Below, in pieces: positions 1 to 11,943 of a stretch of 64,000 bases of DNA (positions are counted from its first letter, which is position 1; each line of letters opens with the position of its first letter). Below the pieces are notes generated by a model. That model saw only the letters and a list, made by a program, of their open reading frames with translations, was not told the DNA's origin and searched no databases. Origin of the DNA: Setoptus koraiensis (taxonomy: Eukaryota > Animalia > Arthropoda); NCBI GenBank assembly GCA_048013815.1, contig CM106585.1, positions 5,146,001 to 5,210,000 of the forward strand, given 5' to 3'. The position numbers and the translations under genes are program-made.

Positions 1-1364
1 ATAGTGTGTGTGTGCCAACTTCCGGGTTTGACCCACAGGCAAACAAATTATTAGCATGTATTCATCAACACACAACAAGCACGCAGACAAATAGGCAAGA
101 CGAGACGACTAACGAATTAACGGAACCTACCTTGCGCATTCCCATCAGATTGGTCTTGTTGCACTTGTTGCTGTTGTTGTTGTTGTTGTTCTGGTAGCCG
201 TGCTACTACATACTGCTAGAGACTACTAAAGGCATTGGGTAACAGTAACAACAACATACGTTACGTCACACACACACACACACTCTCACATGATAGCGGG
301 CGAGAGATGTGGCAATAGTTGTGGCGCTTGTAGTTAGTACCATTATTGTTCAACATTTTTTTACACGTTGACCGCTAGCCAAGCTAGGCCACTCTCGCTC
401 AATGGACAGGTTCGGCCCCCACACCTGCTCGTTGCTGTGTTGTAAGTGTCGATCATCATGTGACCAGATGGGTGGCAAACTATTATATAACATTTATAGT
501 GCTCATCTGTCAAGTGGTCAGTTATCCCTCTATCAAAGGCTAACCGTTAAAACTGTTGCCGTTACTTTACTTACATAACCACTGCTGCTGTAGCTGTTCT
601 AGCCACTTTCTACCGTTAGCCACACTACTCTCTACTTACGTACTTTATACACGATTATAACATAAGCTTGATAATAACTTAACCCACACCTTTTCAAGGC
701 TCATCTCATCAGCTCCATTACTCCTAGTTTATGGCCGCCTCACACACACATTACAAAGTGGACGGTCTCACAATGGTCAGAGGTACAATGTTTAGCTGTT
801 TCTTGGCTCGCTAAAAACCGGTGAGTAAGCTAGAGAGTTAGCTCGAAGCAAAAGTGAGAAAAAAAGAAGCGAGAGTGACGCCACTTAGCTAAAGACGGCC
901 CATATTTGTTATTTAATGTACAAACAAGTTGTGAACATCCGTTAGTTTAATTGAGTGAGCTGTAATGGTCAATTCAACAGAAACTACAAATTGAAGGTCC
1001 ATATAACAGCAACGACAGCAATAGTTGAAAATTTTGTTTAAAGTGACCAGTGAATAATTGTCGGTCGAACCAAAAGCAAGTTCATTCGCAAATCAAACAA
1101 GCAACAGACAACTTTGTAAAATTTAATTCCGCGCACCAACTCTACAGACAAGATTCACAAATCGACACCCCAAACTGCAAACACACACATACACTTTACA
1201 AGCTGTAAGAATTAATCGTAAACTCAAACACTAATAACTGTATCCCTTAAAACTAAGGTAACTAGATAATCATCGATCTACTGTTCTGTTCTCCTCATAT
1301 CCAATTAATTCATATCGCCGGTACAGATTATTAGAAACCAGAACCAAACAAACAAACACACAAA

Positions 1365-1731
1365 ATGAAATTCTTCAGAGTTTTCTCCATGCTTATGGTG
1401 GTGGCCGTTGTTGTTGCAGTATTCACATCACATAATGTTGAGGCTGGCAAAAAGAAGATGCTCAAGAAGGCAGCATTGACCGCTATGCTCTTGAAGGGTG
1501 GCAAAAAGATCCTCTTGCCCCTACCAATACCCATTCCAATTCCGTAAGTTACACAACAATAACACCAACAAAAATTCTGCCACATCCTTCACATATGCTC
1601 AATTGACTCATCCATTGACTTCCTTTTTCCGGTTTCTCGTTACGTGCCATTTGTTTGACAGATTCTTGAAGCAAAAAGAGCCAGTCTACTACCCCCAACC
1701 ATCGTATTCTTCATCGTATTCCTCATACTGA
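1365..1731 (+). CDS. Small secreted cationic Pro-rich peptide, 82 aa, 2 exons: join(1365..1543,1662..1731)
   Basis: ATG at 1365, signal-peptide-like N-terminus ending VEA, GTAAGT donor at 1544 and TTTGACAG acceptor ending 1661. Splicing joins two ORF-track frames into ...LLPLPIPIPIP-FLKQKEPVYYPQPSYSSSYSSY*. Confidence 0.8.
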
Positions 1732-3373
1732 AAGCATTATCATATAATCAATTGATTCATAAGTTTCATCATTCTATAGCCGATACCGACATGTTTAGCA
1801 CGCACACACAATATGGAAAGACAGAGGTTTGGCCGCAAATATTTATTTATGCAACAACTTGAATCGCCCAATTCACTCCGAACTATCAGACTTGCTGATA
1901 CTACATATCTAATCCCCATAAGGCTCCCGATCCCTCCTATTCCGTAAAACTGGGCACAGATTCCGATAAACTAGATAGATCTATCCTAGAATTAATCCAG
2001 TCATTGCACGCAGACACATATACAATCACTGGCCACCGCTCACATTCAAATATATGAACAAGAGGAAACAGTAGCATAGAAATGCGAGCTGCATCAAGAG
2101 AAGTAAAACCACAATACAATCGGTCTATTGATTCGAAAAAAGATGGAGGGTATGCTCAAACGGTGCCATAGTGTGTTAATGATGCATTTAAAAGATGGTG
2201 CTCGCCAAAGTGAACGATGTTTTGGGTGTTGTTGTTGTTTGATGAATTAAAACAAGCAATTAAACATTTAGTCTCAAACTAATGAACAAGGGTCCACTTG
2301 TCTATTAGGCTTTATCTATTTAATTGTTGAGGTCTAGCACCTGTTTGTATTTTTATTCGTTTTTTCTCAATGTATAAGTGCGAGTTTTTGGGTGTATCTA
2401 ACTGTTTCTCGATGTACTAATTTTAAGGCGGGGTTTCCCCCTTCCAAAATGCTACGAGTATTAAGCGTATTACAAGTGTTGCGTCTAGGGATTTACTATA
2501 GCAGCCTGCTTCCGAGAGATGGCTTGACAAACATTAACCTAGTCCTTGTTTAGTATTTTATTCATTACTAATTTGTCGTTTGCGCTTCAATTATTCCACT
2601 TGATCTCTGATTGGAATAGGTTCTAGTATAGATGAAGATTTGCTACGCATTCTTCTTCGGTCATGTTTCTTTATCCTCTTTCTTTCTTTATTTATGACGG
2701 CGATTCTCATAGACCCGAGCCCTCAATCTCTAACTCGATTCTCTATGGTTCTTAGTGTTGTACAAAATTCCCCTTGTAGACTATATATTATAGAATTGAA
2801 GATCAATGCTTATTTAAATAAAATTAAAAATTAACCTATGGTAGAATTTTTATGACGATGGACCATATAGATGAGAGATGTGGCTTCTTCTTGGTCGATT
2901 GCAATTTAATACAAAAGGATGAGCAAGTTTGATCGCCCAAAAGCCTTATGGGTTGCGGTTATACCACAATATATAAATATATATGTACATATTACTACTG
3001 TTTTTTTAGTCAGAGTTAGTCACTGTAATTCGTAGAGTAGCGATTTCAATCACTGTCGAATATATTAATTGCCCGGTGCTTGTGCAACTCATACGTCGTC
3101 GTTCTAGCTAATTTCAAAGAAGGGTTTCTTCACAACAACCAATCTCGATGGCGTCCACATGGTTTTACAATTGATAGATGTTTAAGAACAAATGTAAAAT
3201 ACCACTTGAATTAAATGTAACAACAACAACAGCAGTAATAACAATCAGTAAAAATAACGGTAACAGCAGATCATCATCGACAGCAAACATCAATCATTTA
3301 ACCAGAGTTCGACCCTAAATAGATAAGTTCCTCAAATTGAGTCTTTTGAGACATGATTCAGTAGTCTATCGAT

Positions 3374-3862
3374 CTATGCCATCTGGGTGGTAGTCTTATT
3401 GGCCAGAGTGTTGATGACTCGATTATTCTTTGTACGGATAGCTAACAAATTGTTAGCTGCCTTTCTTATTATATCACTATTGGTAAAATTGTTTGTTCCA
3501 CTTGTCAAGGGTACTTCCGGTGGCGAGCTAATAGTGTGACTTTTGATTAATTTGCTTGACGATGCTAGCTGCGATGACGATTGCATGTTATGTAATGGCA
3601 TACTTTGTTGACTGGTCAAAGGATTATGTTGTTGTTGCTGCTGATAAAGATTGTTATTACTATTATTATTGTTGTTGTTGCTATTGGTGGCATTTAGATT
3701 GCTATTCGGAGTCATTGCAGTGGAGACTTGTTGTTGTAGCTGTTGTTGATTTTGGTTTATGTTCATTTGACGTTGATTTCGACGACGACGATCGATCAAT
3801 ATATATAGTCTATTGATCCAGTTCCAACCATGACGGAACCAGTTGCACAGGCGGGCTAATTG
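3374..3862 (-). CDS. Putative stop-codon readthrough extension of Ace (162 aa, Q/N/S-rich)
   Basis: In frame with the Ace TGA at 3865-3863; context TGA CAA TTA G; open to TAG at 3376-3374. Confidence 0.55.
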   Translation of the reverse strand, partial: QLARLCNWFRHGWNWINRLYILIDRRRRNQRQMNINQNQQQLQQQVSTAMTPNSNLNATNSNNNNNNSNNNLYQQQQQHNPLTSQQSMPLHNMQSSSQLASSSKLIKSHTISSPPEVPLTSGTNNFTNSDIIRKAANNLLAIRTKNNRVINTLANKTTTQMA

Positions 3863-6800
3863 TCAATCACCTGCGGTGACAGTGAAGTCTGGCTTCCACA
3901 ACCGTTTGGCCAAAACTAAGAGTAATAGTATCAAAATTATCACTATGATTCCCAATATTATAAATAGGTACGATTGCCTGTTGCTACCTAGTGAAAATCT
4001 TGTCTTTGAGATGTCGTTATGATTGCCCTGGCATTCGTGGCTCCCTTGTGTGCTAGCTAGATGGTTTAAAGGATTTAAGTGATACACAAGAAAAGTATCT
4101 CGCCGTTAGAAACTGGTGATAGTATCACAATATCAATGATGTAATAATACATGTTATATTGACAACAAGGCTTACTTGTATTATTCACTAGCTTGGGCAA
4201 GTAGTGCAGCCAAAAAGCACATTTCTTGGCCCTCGGGCCATGTCCGATGCGAGTACCTGGGCCTACCTGCAACTCCAAGTACTCTCTATTATGTGAATAT
4301 TGGGGCCACTGCTCACTCAATAGATTTGTCTCGTTGATACGCGTAGGATTCCTATAAGATATTATAAAAATGTGCATGAGTTAGTAGGTAGGTAATTCAA
4401 TAGACGTCTAGATAGACTGATCTCTGTTGTTTGTGTATTTACCCGTATTTGGCAAAATTGGCCCAATAGTTCATCATGCGCCGACTCAGTTGAACCTCTT
4501 GAGGTGAATATCCGTAGGCTGGATTGAGAGGTTCACCAAAGATAAAATTTATTTCATCGGCGTGCAGCACTCCCATCCACTCTGGCCAAGGACTTACGGT
4601 TGAGCGATGCTTAAAATAATACATGTAGACAGAGTTTCCGCTTTGGGCGTACTTAATTGCAAATTCATTAACGTGACAAGTGAAAAAGTAGTCACCCACT
4701 ATCTTGTCCATGGCATCATAATTAGAAATGGAATCATTCGGATTATTCCAATTGGTATATTCATAGATTATTGCCTCTCTACCCAGAGTCTGGTATGCAA
4801 ACGGATTTAGGTCATCTTTAACTAGACGCAAGAAGTCCTCTCGCTCCATACTAAGATGATCTGGTGGCCTGCATGTTGGTCCACCATCTAATTGCGACGC
4901 GTCTTGCCCAGTGTTTTGAGACATAGATGAAGGAGATCCAGAATCATAGAGATTATTGAGCTGGTGCTGTTGTTTATTGTTGATATTACTCTGCTGGTAT
5001 TGTTTGCTAACACTCATGTACTGATCATCATTTAGATCATCATCTTGACCTCGTTGATTGTTTATATTGTTGTTGTTTTGATTGTTCAGTGTAGATAGTA
5101 GCCGCCTATTATCAATACTGTTCAATTTGTTTGATGCCACTGACATCGGCTGTGATTGTATAGAATCATCTAACGGCGAAGACGGTGGAGCTACTGTTGT
5201 CGACTGTGCCGAAATGCTACCACCATTACCAGTACTACTGCCAGTTGGGCATCTATTAAATTCTGGTATATGGTATATTAGAAAGAAGTTGCCCTCGTCA
5301 GAGTTGCTGCCCAATAATAGACGCGTCTTTTTGAAATTAGATTTGGCTAAAGATTCGGCTGGTTGTTCCAATAAGAACGAGCCATCAACAACTGGCACAA
5401 ATGAAAAGTCAACGACATTCTTATAATGGCCTACATCTTGTGTGACCATTGTCATAGGATCGGCTTTTACGAGGCACTGAATAACGGCGTCCAGATCACT
5501 TATATCAGATGGACAATTTAGAGCTCTGGCTAACTCAAGACCTAGGGCCATCATCTCTTTGGTGTCTTTGATCCCCCAGGGATTTGTAGCGGCTCCCGAT
5601 TGCAGAATGGCCTGGCTAAACAGGTTACGCGACAGTGGCGACAACAAATGATAGGCCACACTGACAGCACCCGCCGATTCGCCAAATATCGTTATTCTAT
5701 TTGGGTCGCCGCCAAATTGTTCAATGTTGTCATTAAGCCATTGCAGAGCCATCAATTGATCGAATAGACCAGAGTTACCTGGCGCATCCGGTGAGCCAAG
5801 ATAGAGAAAACCAAGTGCGGCGACGCGATAATTCATGCTAACAACAAGTATGTCTTCTTCGCTTGCCAATATACCACCATCGTAGATAGATAACGAGGAG
5901 GTACCGTAATAGAAGCCTCCGCCGAATATCCACACAAGCACCGGACGCAATCTCTTGGAATCGGGTTCACGCTGTTCATTGTTATTATTGTTACCATTAT
6001 CATTGCTATTTGTAGTTGCCGATTGTGATGAATATCTTGTGTTGGACGAACCTCGCCTAAAATAGCCACTTGTTTCACCATCATTAGTATCCAGGTAGCC
6101 ACTATTAACAGCAGCGCCATCTGACATCCATGAAGATATATTATCCTCGTTGTTTCCATTGTTAGACTGTCTATAGGTGTATTTGATAGAGGAGCCCAAT
6201 GGAGCCCAAATATTCAAATGCAAACAGTCCTCATCCAACGGTGTGTTGGCATTCCACATGGAGGTGCCACGAAATGAATTGCCAAAGAAAGTGTCATTGA
6301 TTTGATAGCATGAATTAGCGAACTTACTTGCGTCTAATTCACCTTGCCAAGGATCAATTGGTTGTGGATGACGAAATCTATATTTACCAATTGGTGGCTT
6401 CGCATAGGGAACACCGAGAAATACCTCAACACTTTTACCTGTCACTTTCTGTTGAATTATTCCACGGACGAGACCCTTGTTGGTTTGTACCAACGGTCTC
6501 TGGCTGCTATAAGGTGTTGCTCTAGGTTTTGTTTTGTGACGTGGCGTCGACGATGGCGTCTGCTTGTCAGTTGTATCTCTTCTTTGGTGTGTTTTCTTGG
6601 CTCGTTCTCTGATTCTAACGTCGTCGGCTTGAGTGCGCTTCAAATCTTGTATCGCAGCCCCAAAGAAACTATTGCTATTCTCGTCGTTCTTAGGTGTTTT
6701 GTCATGATCTGCCTCAGTTTTTTGTTGTGCTCCAACTTGGTACTGGGCATGTTTAGACATCTCAATCATACCGTTTCTATCGTCTTGAGGTAAATTCAGA

Positions 6801-9097
6801 TCGTAAGTCTGCTCTATGGTGTGCTTCAATTTTGAATCGGATTTCGCTGACTCGAATAGAATATTGGTCATTTTGTGTTGCTCGTTGACGTTTCTACTGT
6901 CGCCCCGCTGCAATAAATCTGATGCCGAGTTATTGTAGTTATATGTAGCGGAAGATAATAGCGGATATAAAGAGGAACTATGTTCTGTGTCAGTGAAGTG
7001 TAAACCTGGCTTTGTTTTGTTTTGTGTTTGCACCACATCCCTAAACAATTTTCCATCAATAATTGGTTCATTAGCATCAGATGGCAACGGTGACAAATTA
7101 TTTATGGTGGAACTGGTGGTAGCTTGACTCGTACTTTTATGATGCCTACTATTGCTAGTACTCCCCTCTAAGGATGACCATTCATCTATTCCTATAATCG
7201 TTGATTGTGACAGCTTCTGACTGGACGACAATTCTGATGATGCTATATTGGGGCCTAAGTTAATATGAAAACTATCTACACTTAAAATAGTTGGCAAACC
7301 AATATAAATTGATCTTGTTAACGATGGGCTAGAACTAATAGCACCCATAGATGATTGTATTGTGCGATGTAACGATGGTAAGTATTCGTTCAATAGTGAT
7401 AGAAATAATATTACAAATAAAACAAGCGCGTTGGTGGCCTTACAGGACGTCCGTGACTTATGTGGTGATTGAATCTTTGCATTGAAAAACATCTTAGGTA
7501 CAGTGATACTTCCTCGATAGTTTTGGTGGTGGCGACCTGGCAGGCAAGAGTACTGCTTCAGTTGGTTATGACGAGAGTTACTGTTACGAAACAGTGAAAA
7601 ATCATCCGAAGCTTTGCTAAATTTAGTGTAAGCCCCATTACAGATTGTTGTCTGTTGTTCAATAAATGATGATGATATCTTCTTCAAATGTTGATCATGA
7701 CCCAGTCTCTCTTCATCCATTAATTTATAGCAATCTTCTCGTCTTGAATTTATCAGATGTGGATCAATTAAACATGATTCCATTGCATGATTCCTATCTT
7801 GTTGGAACTTTTTGTAAATTGGAGCTCTTTTCAATGTTTGTGTATAGTTGATTGAACTGAGTTCTAATCGGTCGGTATTAGTAGCAACATGGCAATTGTT
7901 GTAAGCCAGGCATTTAGGACGTCGACATAGGTTAAAATGTGGGCTCATATGTTCGATAAAGTTTATCCTAAATATTTCAAGTGAGCAATTGATAATATTA
8001 TTCGAGACTTTATCTGATGATGAATACGACTTTCTCAACTGTAGTACATAGGAAAAAAACTCGGAGATGGTGATAATCAGCGAGATATTTCTGCATGTCA
8101 GCCTCTTTGTTGAAAGAAGAACGAAGGACCATCGTTGTAGTTGAATATTACAATAATTAGTCTCTATCAGTATTGCGATGATTTCCTCTTCTTGATCATG
8201 ATAAGTAATTAGGTTTTCGCTCTGTCTGCCAACTATCTTAGAAGCGTTAGCAGAAGAACTAATATATCGACCGAGGCCAGCTATTAGTGACCCAATGATA
8301 ATTTTGTACTGATGAAGATAATCTTCCAATGTGAAAATTTGTCCATCATACTTGAGTCCACGTTTCGAGCATTGGTTGCTGTTGCCATCTTGTTGAGTAA
8401 AACAAACAATAAGTTGTGCTTGGCGCGAATATGACGATAACCAGATTAGAAATCTAACTTTATGTATATGTGTGAACTCCATCATTACCAATGGTTTTTG
8501 GATTCTTATATGTAGTTGCTGATCACCAGTATTATCGACAACTTGCAGCTTTTGGTATGTATTAGTTTCTGACTTATACTGGATCTCCATAGATGACAAC
8601 AACGCACTCAATAACCGGATGATATCATCTTCAGTGATTTCAACTTGTCTAGATAAATCGAATGATTGCTGGATGAACCAATCAAAACTGTTATACACTG
8701 GTATGTGCTCGTTGTTGCTGATACTGAATAAGTACAATCTAGAATGATGGTAATATTGTTTGCCTATAGATTGATTGTCGGTGTTGATTATCATCGTTTC
8801 GCAGCCATGAAGAGTAGGCAGCATTGTAGATGGCAGAGTGGTTGGGCACCAAGTATCTATGGCTAGTCTAGAAAAAGCAAATATGGTAGTGGTGATGGTG
8901 GTAATGTGATTTGCATAATATGAAATTGTTGCTGGATTCCGCTTACATGCAATAGCTGTTGTATAGATATAGATATAATAACTTGTTAAGTAGACTATGC
9001 CATGACTATGATCGGCTTGACATCCAGCTGATTTGCGACAGCAAATATTGGCTTTAACAACAACAAAATCACTATAATAGTGATTAGTCATGCACAT
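3863..9097 (-). CDS. Ace: Acetylcholinesterase (ace1-type), about 1674 aa, 3 exons: 9097..4443, 4351..4176, 4056..3863 (alternative in-frame acceptor at 4098)
   Basis: Motifs MWNANT (choline-site Trp), EDCLHLNIW, WIFGGGF, FGESAG (catalytic Ser), SNSDEGNFF (Glu), GVLHADEI (His) and CAFW. GT-AG introns of 91 and 119 nt keep the frame. The true start codon is uncertain; 9097 is the first ATG of the open frame. Confidence 0.93.
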
Positions 9098-11943
9098 GGG
9101 TCGTGGTGGGTTCAATTGACAATGATGAGAGCAATGGTGAGAATTATTGTGAGAGTTGCTGGATTTATAGTTGTAGTTAGAATTGAAGTAAATGCTGTAG
9201 CCTCTACTGTCTCGGTGGTAGTTGAATTGGTTGTTGTTTTTGTTGTTATAATCTACTCTTTTATAACTGGAATTGCAATTTATAATAGTTGCGGTTTTTC
9301 GTTACTGATATTAGTGCTGTTGAGGATTGAATTATTATCGGAAGTGGTGCTAAATTCATAATGGGACCATTATTATCAACATGATAACATGATTCGTTTG
9401 TCTTTGTTAATGTAAAACGATGCATCTTTGAAAATGTGTCGCTACGATGCTCAAATGATTTACATATTGTCTGATCCCTGCGTTCATCTTAAATCTGTTG
9501 ACAGTTGCTTTTGTATAACTATACATGTTTTGAATTATTACGGCTCTCAAAAATATTTTTGTGTTGTTATGATTAAGCTCACCAATATTTGTGCCATGGA
9601 ATTAGCGAACGAACAACGAAAAAACTTACTATTATTAGTATTAGTCATCAAGAGCCCAAAAGATACTCTCCGTTCACTTTTGATTCAAATAATTCACATC
9701 GATATAAACCAACTCATTAGATATCCACTGTCGTTATTCAAGATTTGAAAGTTTACTGATGAAAACCTCCTGAAAATTCACGCTACTAAATGGCTGATTC
9801 TCATGTGACAGTTGAGAGTTGAAGTGCATTAGCTTGCTTAGACCTACTGCTGCGAACATAATGACACCAAGAGGATTTATATTCGTGTTGATGAGTCCCG
9901 AGTTGGAGCTGAACCTATTCTATGTCCCTTCACTTAAATTTCTCTACTGTAATCATAATCTCACAATCCACAATTAGTCGAATTGCCTGCCGTCAAGCCT
10001 TGAAAATCGAAACGCGCACCTGTGAGGCTTATTTTCTATCTACCAGCTACAAGTTCACCAAGTTTGAGAGACAGATAATTTGTGTGCGTGTGAATGAGTC
10101 TCGTTTGTATATTGTGATTTCGAACATGATCGACGAATCAGCGCACAAACAACTATGTCTAGGAAGTATTGTATTGTCTGGACAGAGAGGCTGCTCTGTT
10201 CTGGATAAAGTTTTCATGGCTACACTTGACACAATTGCACAGAATGGATTGACTACAAATTGATTTGTAGTCTTCGTTGATAGCTGTTTTATAGATGGTA
10301 AAAACGTCTGCAATATATTGATGTTAATTTCTATGGTATCCGTAAATGATGAGGCGTCACTTTGTGGATAAAAAATTAGAAAAGATCAAGACAATGATAA
10401 AATGTCGTTATTAAATTGGGCTGAGTAAATAGAGGAACGTGAAGCCTAATAGTAATGGGAGGCCTTGAATCAATCTAACACTATGTGATAATGGACAAAA
10501 CTCTGACACACATTACTGTGATTGATGATGCAAATTGAGTGGATCCTCGGTTGATAGACCCGACTTTTGTCCCTTCTTTTCATTGTCTGAGATTTTCTTT
10601 CGATATTGATAGCTACGCTATGTAGCTCGCTCAATTACACCATCATGGAAAGAAAACTATTTGTTGTTTTTTCAGCTACATCTATTGAGTTGTTCGCTCT
10701 GGTGATCATAAACATATATTATATCAATTATTCTATATATTCTGACCAGATCATTGTGTCTATTCAGAGAATATATCGCTAGCAAAAAAAAATCCAAATT
10801 CTTTCCAGTTTCATTGTTGTTTCTTTACTTTACAAACGGACGGATATTAATGAACTGACTGTAGTATTTGCTGTTCCATCTATCTCAGCATAAGTATCTA
10901 TATAAGTTTATCATTGGTCATCTCGTGTGGGATGCACTAGATTGTTCTGGGGAGGCGAGCGCGCTCTTTGTTTGCTGTTGTTAGTTCTGGTTTGAGTGAG
11001 ACTTGTGCATATCTAGATCATGCACCTAATCTCACACCTCTTCTCTTGTCTGTATATTCGATACATAAACCTATAAAACTTCACATATGCACATGTTTGT
11101 ACAATTCACCTTACTCCAACAATAGTTTCTCTCTATCTTCAATATTTACCAAAGTATTTCAGCTATCATTTAGATGATATATGATGATATGTGGTCAATT
11201 GATAGTCTACTTATATTTACAATAACATCAACAATAGTATGTAGCTAATTCTTCCTGAAACACTCGACCCCTGTTCGATAGGCTCTGATCAAAACTGGGC
11301 TAAACAGGGCCAGCGACACCATGCAAGCTAAAACTCATGAAACTCTAATTTGAGTCAAGTCTAGGTATTTTGAAATTTGTTCATATTACCTACTATTGAT
11401 AGATTCACACAAGTTGGGGGCCCTTAATTTTCCACACTCCACTACTTAGTCGATGAAGCATCGCTAAGTTGGGCCAACTTCACGAGGCAATAAGTTAGTT
11501 CATTCAGCTACCGTTAACTGAATAAATGCACTTAGACGTATCTTCCATGCTTGAATTGAGTTTATTCGTGCTCGTTGTGTGTCAGAGTTTAATCTTTTGT
11601 TGGTCATGTAGAGTTTGTTGTTGTGTTTATAAAGCCAATTGAATATTAGGGGAGAGACAGACAGAGAGAGAGAGAGGAAGGCAACAATATTAAGCGATAT
11701 AAGCTATGTTGTTGTTGTTCAGGCTAGATAAGTCTGTCATGTTGATGTCTATTGCTATTGTCCGCGCAATACTGTGTGATGTTCGTCTATTTTATATCTC
11801 GTGCTTGCGTGTTTGTTTTTCTGTACCTCGATACCTCAGTAATAATTCGGTATTAACAGTAGCAACCTCTATGCAGCACCACTATAGATCCATTCAACCA
11901 GCAATAACAACATCAATTACAAGTAACAGCATGAAAGAGTGAC

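Follow-up and report, generated by a model that had tools for sequence, protein, structure and literature searches.

A mite acetylcholinesterase stop codon as a candidate site of programmed readthrough into a conserved cytoplasmic tail

Does translation of acetylcholinesterase (AChE) continue beyond the stop codon in some mites? This question is raised by a stretch of 64,000 nucleotides from Setoptus koraiensis (contig CM106585.1, positions 5,146,001 to 5,210,000), referred to as the window and numbered from its first letter, the minus strand of which carries a cholinesterase gene. The coding frame of this gene, all features of which are given on the minus strand, ends with TGA at 3863-3865, a CAATTA hexamer of the CARYYA type lies directly 3' of this stop (3857-3862), and the frame stays open for another 162 sense codons (3377-3862) until a second stop, TAG, at 3374-3376. 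The initial annotation of this DNA had described the arrangement correctly, coordinates included, and had proposed a readthrough isoform with a cytoplasmic tail; the stop and the open extension in nine relatives, and the stop context in eight of them, now support this proposal. Herein, we propose programmed stop-codon readthrough of the tobacco mosaic virus (TMV) type in the mite AChE messenger RNA (mRNA) as the mechanism, to which we assign a probability of roughly 85%.

Several lines of evidence argue for this reading. First, ten lineages were compared, namely the window and nine relatives (L001-L008 and L012) represented by Logan, JGI or ENA contigs; the contigs of L009 and L010 stop short of the last exon and do not belong to the set. 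At the position of the window TGA, all ten lineages have a stop (TGA in seven, TAG in L007 and L008, TAA in L004), never a sense codon, and the in-frame extension behind it is open in all ten, over 162 codons in the window and 201-274 codons in the relatives. The other two frames of the extensions hold 5-22 stops. Past the second stop, in-frame stops become frequent, with 4-8 in the next 100 codons of eight lineages and 6 in the window, and the coding signature ends there. Second, the extensions align in four blocks with 16 invariant residues (alignment A1, nine sequences). The N-terminal block, which begins with the first codon after the stop, has the consensus QLxRLCERxSRxGDxxNRxFILxDRRWRNQRAAAS, and its invariant residues include Q1, L2, R4, L5, C6, R18, I21, L22, R25, R26, R28 and N29; the other blocks are GMQLHNMRP, an alanine-rich block ending in KFKMLRSNTLAAAFG, and DLxAxRTKDERxxNTLS. 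In the conserved blocks, the proportion of synonymous differences (pS) is about 0.7 and saturated, the proportion of nonsynonymous differences (pN) is 0.06-0.3 among the relatives, and dN/dS is 0.04-0.26; judged from these ratios, the extension is under purifying selection at the protein level. The 3' ends of related Ace genes thus bear out the proposal, with a stop in nine of nine relatives and CAAYTA in eight of nine, together with these dN/dS values. Third, in every genomic contig, stop and tail share a single uninterrupted exon and are in frame with the transmembrane segment. In L008, TAG and the whole extension stand in one contig, which is probably a transcript contig because both exon junctions are present in it without introns.

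The arrangement is not confined to these lineages. A search with a profile of the tail recovered 31 further open reading frame (ORF) clusters with the same motifs, and no Pfam family was found in any of them; the tail is therefore widespread in the clade. In the catalytic-domain tree, the window protein falls outside the group of all other extension-bearing sequences (support 83/95) and L004 pairs with Aceria tosichella; on this placement, the stop and tail predate the split of the window species from the Aceria group. L007 and L008, which share TAG, are not sisters in the tree; this part of it is poorly resolved, and independent changes are not implied. The AChE of an outgroup mite, Halotydeus destructor, has no extension: its stop reads TGA ACA, and the frame then runs for 7 codons to TAG.

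When the tail by itself was searched with phmmer against 1.84 billion representatives, a single match was returned, P0121, whose transmembrane segment runs straight on into the tail and which has W at the position of the stop. A sense codon in P0121 was considered and rejected, as the DNA reads GAC TGA CAA TTA GCC, with TGA at L001:1259-1261; the W is false because the gene caller applied a code with TGA=Trp to a eukaryotic contig. Such a call is a trap for protein-only comparison, and other public gene calls end at the first stop or give the tail as an orphan ORF. The same W, taken at face value, would favour the idea that UGA encodes selenocysteine or that the genetic code is changed. However, apart from the caller artefact, some relatives have TAG or TAA at the site, and no in-frame stop interrupts the upstream ORF of 1558 codons. 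No selenocysteine insertion sequence (SECIS) or any Rfam family was found in 2300-4100. As UGA is not specifically conserved and no SECIS/Rfam match exists in this interval, the selenoprotein reading was rejected, and selenocysteine or a changed code as a whole appears scarcely credible.

It had also been cautioned that the CAA/AAC repeats of this region make open frames more likely by chance, and the extension might accordingly be read as a product of a low-complexity 3' untranslated region rich in CAA and AAC. The tail is indeed rich in A and C, and its runs of Q and N lower the frequency of stops. Nevertheless, at the tail's own base composition, 162 codons would stay open by chance with a probability of about 5.5e-5, only 5 of 20000 dinucleotide shuffles of the tail stay open, and nine lineages of different composition are also open, with motifs common at both ends. 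Each of the other five frames of the tail stretch contains 8-16 stops, and among the 21 stop-CARYYA sites of the window, long open frames on both sides are found only at the AChE stop. A chance ORF, rejected by the comparative data, has a negligible probability. Separate downstream initiation was likewise rejected; it cannot explain the tail because conservation begins at the first codon after the stop, before any in-frame ATG.

The sequence around the stop is itself conserved. CAAUUA is the TMV readthrough hexamer, a type I signal, of which CARNBA is the yeast variant. In the window the native context is TGA-CAATTAGCCCGC, and CAATTA or CAACTA directly follows the stop in nine of the ten lineages (the window and eight of the nine relatives), with xCC-CGG or xCC-CGC next in all ten. 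Over positions +1 to +21, the major-base frequency is 0.91 (0.87 at third positions), versus 0.48 in the 30 nucleotides upstream, and third positions further into the conserved helix of the tail reach 0.52-0.67. In the ten-lineage comparison, codon choice is also constrained at +7 to +21 (GCCCGCCTGTGCAAC, 3842-3856). Thus, Gln1 is CAA in 9/9, Leu2 is TTA in 8/9, Ala3 is GCC in 7/7, Arg4 is CGG in 8/9, Leu5 is CTA in 7/9 and Glu7 is GAA in 8/8, while each of the invariant residues Arg18, Arg25, Arg26, Arg28 and Leu22 is encoded by between three and six different codons. On this comparison, the nucleotides of +1 to +21 are constrained beyond what the protein requires, at the very place where a readthrough context has its effect. 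In a human-cell reporter, CAAUUA yields readthrough of about 15%, to which each of the six bases contributes (PMC4132726), and the Drosophila gene bi is a readthrough candidate with a post-stop CAATTA (PMC3609751).

A 3' stem-loop had been suggested as a further stimulator. The 8-bp stem in question, CTGGTTCC (3835-3842) with GGAACTGG (3818-3825), does exist and is part of the minimum free energy fold; however, the 95-nucleotide stretch of the window folds no better than its shuffles (z 0.49), and no conserved RNA structure after the stop was found (RNAalifold consensus -1.1 kcal/mol). The stem falls in the part of the helix that has been rewritten in the window species. These results also bear on adenosine-to-inosine (A-to-I) editing of the stop, by which UGA or UAG would become UGG, be read as Trp and be followed by ordinary translation. 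A single A-to-I change would be enough for either codon, and local pairing is possible near the window stop, but the TAA of L004 would take two edits, no conserved double-stranded structure surrounds the stop, and the conserved element is a known readthrough hexamer. L008, the probable transcript, still has TAG, though assembled contigs drop minor variants. Taken together, editing seems very improbable.

The window sequence alone would also allow the stop to be taken out by alternative splicing, either within a mini-intron GTGATTGACAATTAG or by use of CAATTAG as an acceptor, with the tail joined in frame: CAG/GTGATT is donor-like and TTAG/ is acceptor-like, and the two are 15 nucleotides apart and in frame. 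The relatives speak otherwise, since there is no GT at that place (GAC TGA, AAT TGA, etc.) and three of them lack the AG (CAACTAACC, CAATTATCC and TGATGGTGC), and both the mini-intron and the TTAG acceptor were rejected on these grounds. Moreover, an intron of 15 nucleotides is far below the introns of this gene (~90-120 nucleotides), the upstream donors (phase 2) joined to the TTAG acceptor would be out of frame and meet a stop after 15 codons, and no joints were found, L008 again keeping the stop. Removal of the stop by splicing is thus most unlikely. An isoform of the vertebrate AChE-R type was rejected as well, because there is no intron at the stop and the tail lies in the same exon.

Several points weigh against readthrough as the mechanism, above all in the window species. 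That ribosomes pass the stop, that they do so by readthrough, how efficiently, and what the tail does are all inferred here from sequence comparison. RNA-side coverage is thin, with one 299-nucleotide contig at 3221-3519 from a run of unknown type and none over the stop. The divergent L012 (2890-2910) has TGA TGG TGC in place of the stop followed by CAAYTA, with the GCCCGG after it kept. As L012 nevertheless retains the stop and a conserved tail of 262 codons, the hexamer is not the sole element able to sustain the arrangement. The stop of L004 is UAA, and in human cells, where UGA and UAG are similar with CAAUUA, UAA is much less efficient (PMC4132726). Finally, the window tail is the most diverged, with 36-49% identity in the conserved blocks versus 53-89% among the others, and it is without the alanine-rich block SALDxAQSAAARVTGSAAAA. 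The coding-type substitution pattern is weaker on the window branch (pN 0.36-0.46), and the constraint on the tail may be weaker in this species.

These last observations lead to the most serious remaining rival, namely that readthrough is real in the relatives while the window tail is a decaying relic, the enzyme of the window species ending at TGA. The window tail is the shortest of all as well as the most diverged, one conserved block is lost, and NWFRHGWNW stands in its helix where relatives have ERLSRCGDS. On the other hand, the 162-codon frame has remained open (P ~5e-5 to 2.5e-4), the stop, CAATTA and GCCCGC are intact, and three parts of the tail are still recognisable at saturated synonymous divergence, namely the N-terminal block (codons 1-32, QLARLC...INRLYILIDRRRRNQRQ, 3767-3862), the LHNM motif (MPLHNMQ, 3581-3601, the counterpart of GMQLHNMRP in relatives) and the C-terminal block (NLLAIRTKNNRVINTLAN, 3398-3451, the counterpart of DLxAxRTKDERxxNTLS). 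In addition, the catalytic domain of the window protein is also on a long branch and the most diverged, so that much of the difference is merely that of a long branch. A relic in the window species is therefore considered improbable, and readthrough that is still in use in this species remains the preferred reading.

The product of the gene matches the Pfam COesterase family (PF00135, 1.2e-124), and the motifs FGESAGA, SDEG and GVLHADE of the Ser-Glu-His triad of the COesterase fold are all intact. The best named matches of the catalytic domain are arthropod AChE, the closest being that of Aceria tosichella, and identity to many relatives is ~54%. On these matches the gene is an acetylcholinesterase of carboxylesterase type B, predicted to be catalytic. 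The large first exon (4443-9115; ORF read 9115-4439) includes the catalytic domain (~6499 to 4443) and ends at 4443 with the donor GG/GTAAAT; exon 2, NPTRINET...CAFWLHYLPKLVNNT, spans 4175-4351 with an open spliced frame and is flanked by introns at 4352-4442 and 4053-4174. The first exon junction (after NFAK-x-G) was also found in relatives; L001 is the only one of these in which both introns were read. The last exon begins at 4052, and its part of the standard protein (3866-4052) consists of a Cys-containing linker, a hydrophobic transmembrane helix (3908-3970) and then KRLWKPDFTVTAGD, with 14 residues between the helix and TGA; the first, putatively leaky stop thus sits inside the last exon. 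The TGA is not an assembly error, because the genomic contigs of two data sets (X1; X2/X3), which cover 3691-5800, agree with the window at 3863-3865; the X2/X3 contigs differ from it by 3 single-nucleotide polymorphisms, all elsewhere than the stop.

A readthrough product of about 1837 residues had been predicted for this gene, which is probably an overestimate, as it assumes that the whole 1558-codon ORF is coding. The called or annotated AChE ORFs of relatives have 667-1022 residues, and a start at the signal-peptide-like MFFNAK (ORF codon 542) would give 1138 residues, or about 1301 with readthrough. Long low-complexity inserts rich in N, Q and S break up the catalytic domain of the window, and ~870 ORF codons of low-complexity sequence lie upstream of it in the same exon. 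At 1801-2297, the contig depth is 88.7 in run X4 (patchy, of unknown type, possibly RNA) versus 2-4 over Ace. Close to this stretch, an ORF of 60 residues with a signal-peptide-like start and a K-rich end with LPIP repeats was observed on the plus strand at 1365-1547, and an Rfam scan of positions 1-3400 of the window gave no match.

The protein ends of the clade share a common plan, with a hydrophobic helix, then KR-x-WK(P), then a polar stub of 14-60 residues; the juxtamembrane motif KRxWK(P) is common to the window and its relatives. From its sequence, the helix near the C-terminus of AChE looks like a true transmembrane anchor and not the glycosylphosphatidylinositol-anchor signal expected of an arthropod AChE. 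Because the tail lies behind this membrane span, which has KR on its inner side, it should be cytoplasmic. In an AlphaFold model of the L005 tail (33-sequence alignment), residues 2-48 form one confident helix (predicted local distance difference test score, pLDDT, ~96) and the rest is disordered. Hydrophobic residues at 2, 5, 9, 12, 16, 19 and 23 make a heptad-like pattern, of which the window keeps all but 12, and the helix carries the invariant Cys6 and a basic RRxRN cluster; the N-terminal block of the window is accordingly predicted to be an alpha-helix with the same kind of pattern and a basic cluster. The aromatic segment, the basic cluster and the Q/N-rich prion-like region that had been placed behind the transmembrane helix fared differently: the basic cluster is conserved as RRxRN, the W-rich aromatic segment is peculiar to the window species, and the Q/N-rich region is present as a poorly conserved linker rather than a conserved domain. 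Microsatellites of the (GTT)n/(CAA)n type lie at 3210-3260 and 3619-3690, the second of them within this linker, and there short-read contigs break and depth spikes. As to the identity of the tail, no Pfam match was obtained at the curated level, and a search of the ESM Atlas with the tail gave only weak, unrelated matches of at most 0.54.

How would the two forms arise? We propose that the first stop, UGA, stands in the leaky context UGA-CAA-UUA together with about 15 further constrained nucleotides. Most ribosomes would end at UGA and release a membrane-anchored enzyme with a cytoplasmic stub of 14 residues, and a fraction would decode UGA with a near-cognate transfer RNA and go on for 162 codons to the next stop. 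Trp, Cys or Arg are the residues inserted at UGA in readthrough. The long isoform would keep the catalytic ectodomain and the transmembrane helix and gain a cytoplasmic tail, made up of a helix of ~45 residues with the conserved Cys and RRxRN, followed by a disordered linker with short conserved motifs. Such a tail is likely to serve in localisation, or in binding a partner or a second subunit at the cytoplasmic face of the membrane; a juxtamembrane helix of the modelled kind would suit the stabilisation of dimers, the binding of partners or an association with the membrane, and the short motifs further along resemble docking sites.

Comparison with known systems places the arrangement more precisely. 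Like the TMV-type signal, the mite AChE has CAA-UUA directly 3' of the stop and more than one type of stop codon, and a downstream structure is neither required in the former nor conserved in the latter. Unlike it, the mite AChE is a cellular animal gene and not a plant virus, its stop is mostly UGA and not UAG, the constraint does not end with the classical six bases but reaches about +21, and L012 has lost the hexamer while keeping stop and tail. With the readthrough genes of Drosophila and Anopheles (Jungreis et al. 2011, 2016) it shares the conserved stop, C at +1, a long coding second ORF with loss of the signature past the second stop, a neuronal, membrane-associated gene and a disorder-rich extension; such a comparative signature defines readthrough genes in flies and mosquitoes (PMC5100048). 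However, the host is here a chelicerate, outside the clade of abundant readthrough, which is reported "following divergence from centipede" (PMC5100048). AChE does not appear in the main text of the readthrough surveys searched, and a literature search found neither translational readthrough of AChE nor readthrough in mites.

Within the cholinesterases, the name "readthrough" is already in use. The vertebrate "readthrough" form AChE-R results from intron retention, i.e. at the transcript level, and has a short soluble C-terminus. Both this form and the mite arrangement provide an alternative C-terminus on AChE, but the mite stop lies within one continuous exon and would be passed by the ribosome, and the product would stay membrane-anchored and gain a cytoplasmic tail. 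The T-peptide of AChE, a tryptophan amphiphilic tetramerisation domain, is extracellular. Its C-terminal amphipathic helix with aromatics and Cys superficially resembles the W-rich segment of the window; in contrast, the mite helix follows the membrane span, the Trp residues are absent in relatives, and identity with the T-peptide was rejected because no match to the Pfam AChE C-terminal family was found (E<=0.1 for the window tail, E<=0.01 for nine tails). Neuroligins and gliotactin, which are without the catalytic serine, have the same topology, with an ectodomain of the cholinesterase fold, one transmembrane helix and short conserved motifs in the cytoplasmic tail. The mite protein differs from them in keeping FGESAGA, Glu and His and in grouping with arthropod AChE, and no similarity of the tails was found (no Pfam match). 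A bolder extension of the present proposal, for which we claim only a tentative standing and which we consider rather doubtful, is that the stop sets the ratio of two AChE forms, the long one being a neuroligin-like scaffold or signal-binding molecule, and separately that +7 to +21 (GCCCGG...) is a new enhancer acting with or, as in L012, without CAAUUA.

The mechanism itself is known, and what is new is the gene (AChE), the host group (a chelicerate) and the product; the sequence suggests an AChE that is catalytic, spans the membrane by itself and carries a cytoplasmic domain under regulation. To the study of recoding, the arrangement adds a deep and clean case of the TMV hexamer in an animal gene, with all three stop codons represented and an extra 15 conserved nucleotides after the hexamer. 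Organophosphate and carbamate acaricides act on AChE, and mites of the eriophyoid type are pests of crops. Ribosomes very probably make a second, longer AChE with a cytoplasmic tail in these animals, and this second, unannotated isoform would change what the "Ace protein" of eriophyoid-type mites is. For cholinesterase biology, it would link the enzymes to those cholinesterase-like adhesion proteins that are not catalytic, and a neuroligin-like long form, if true, would anchor and target AChE in a way not seen before.

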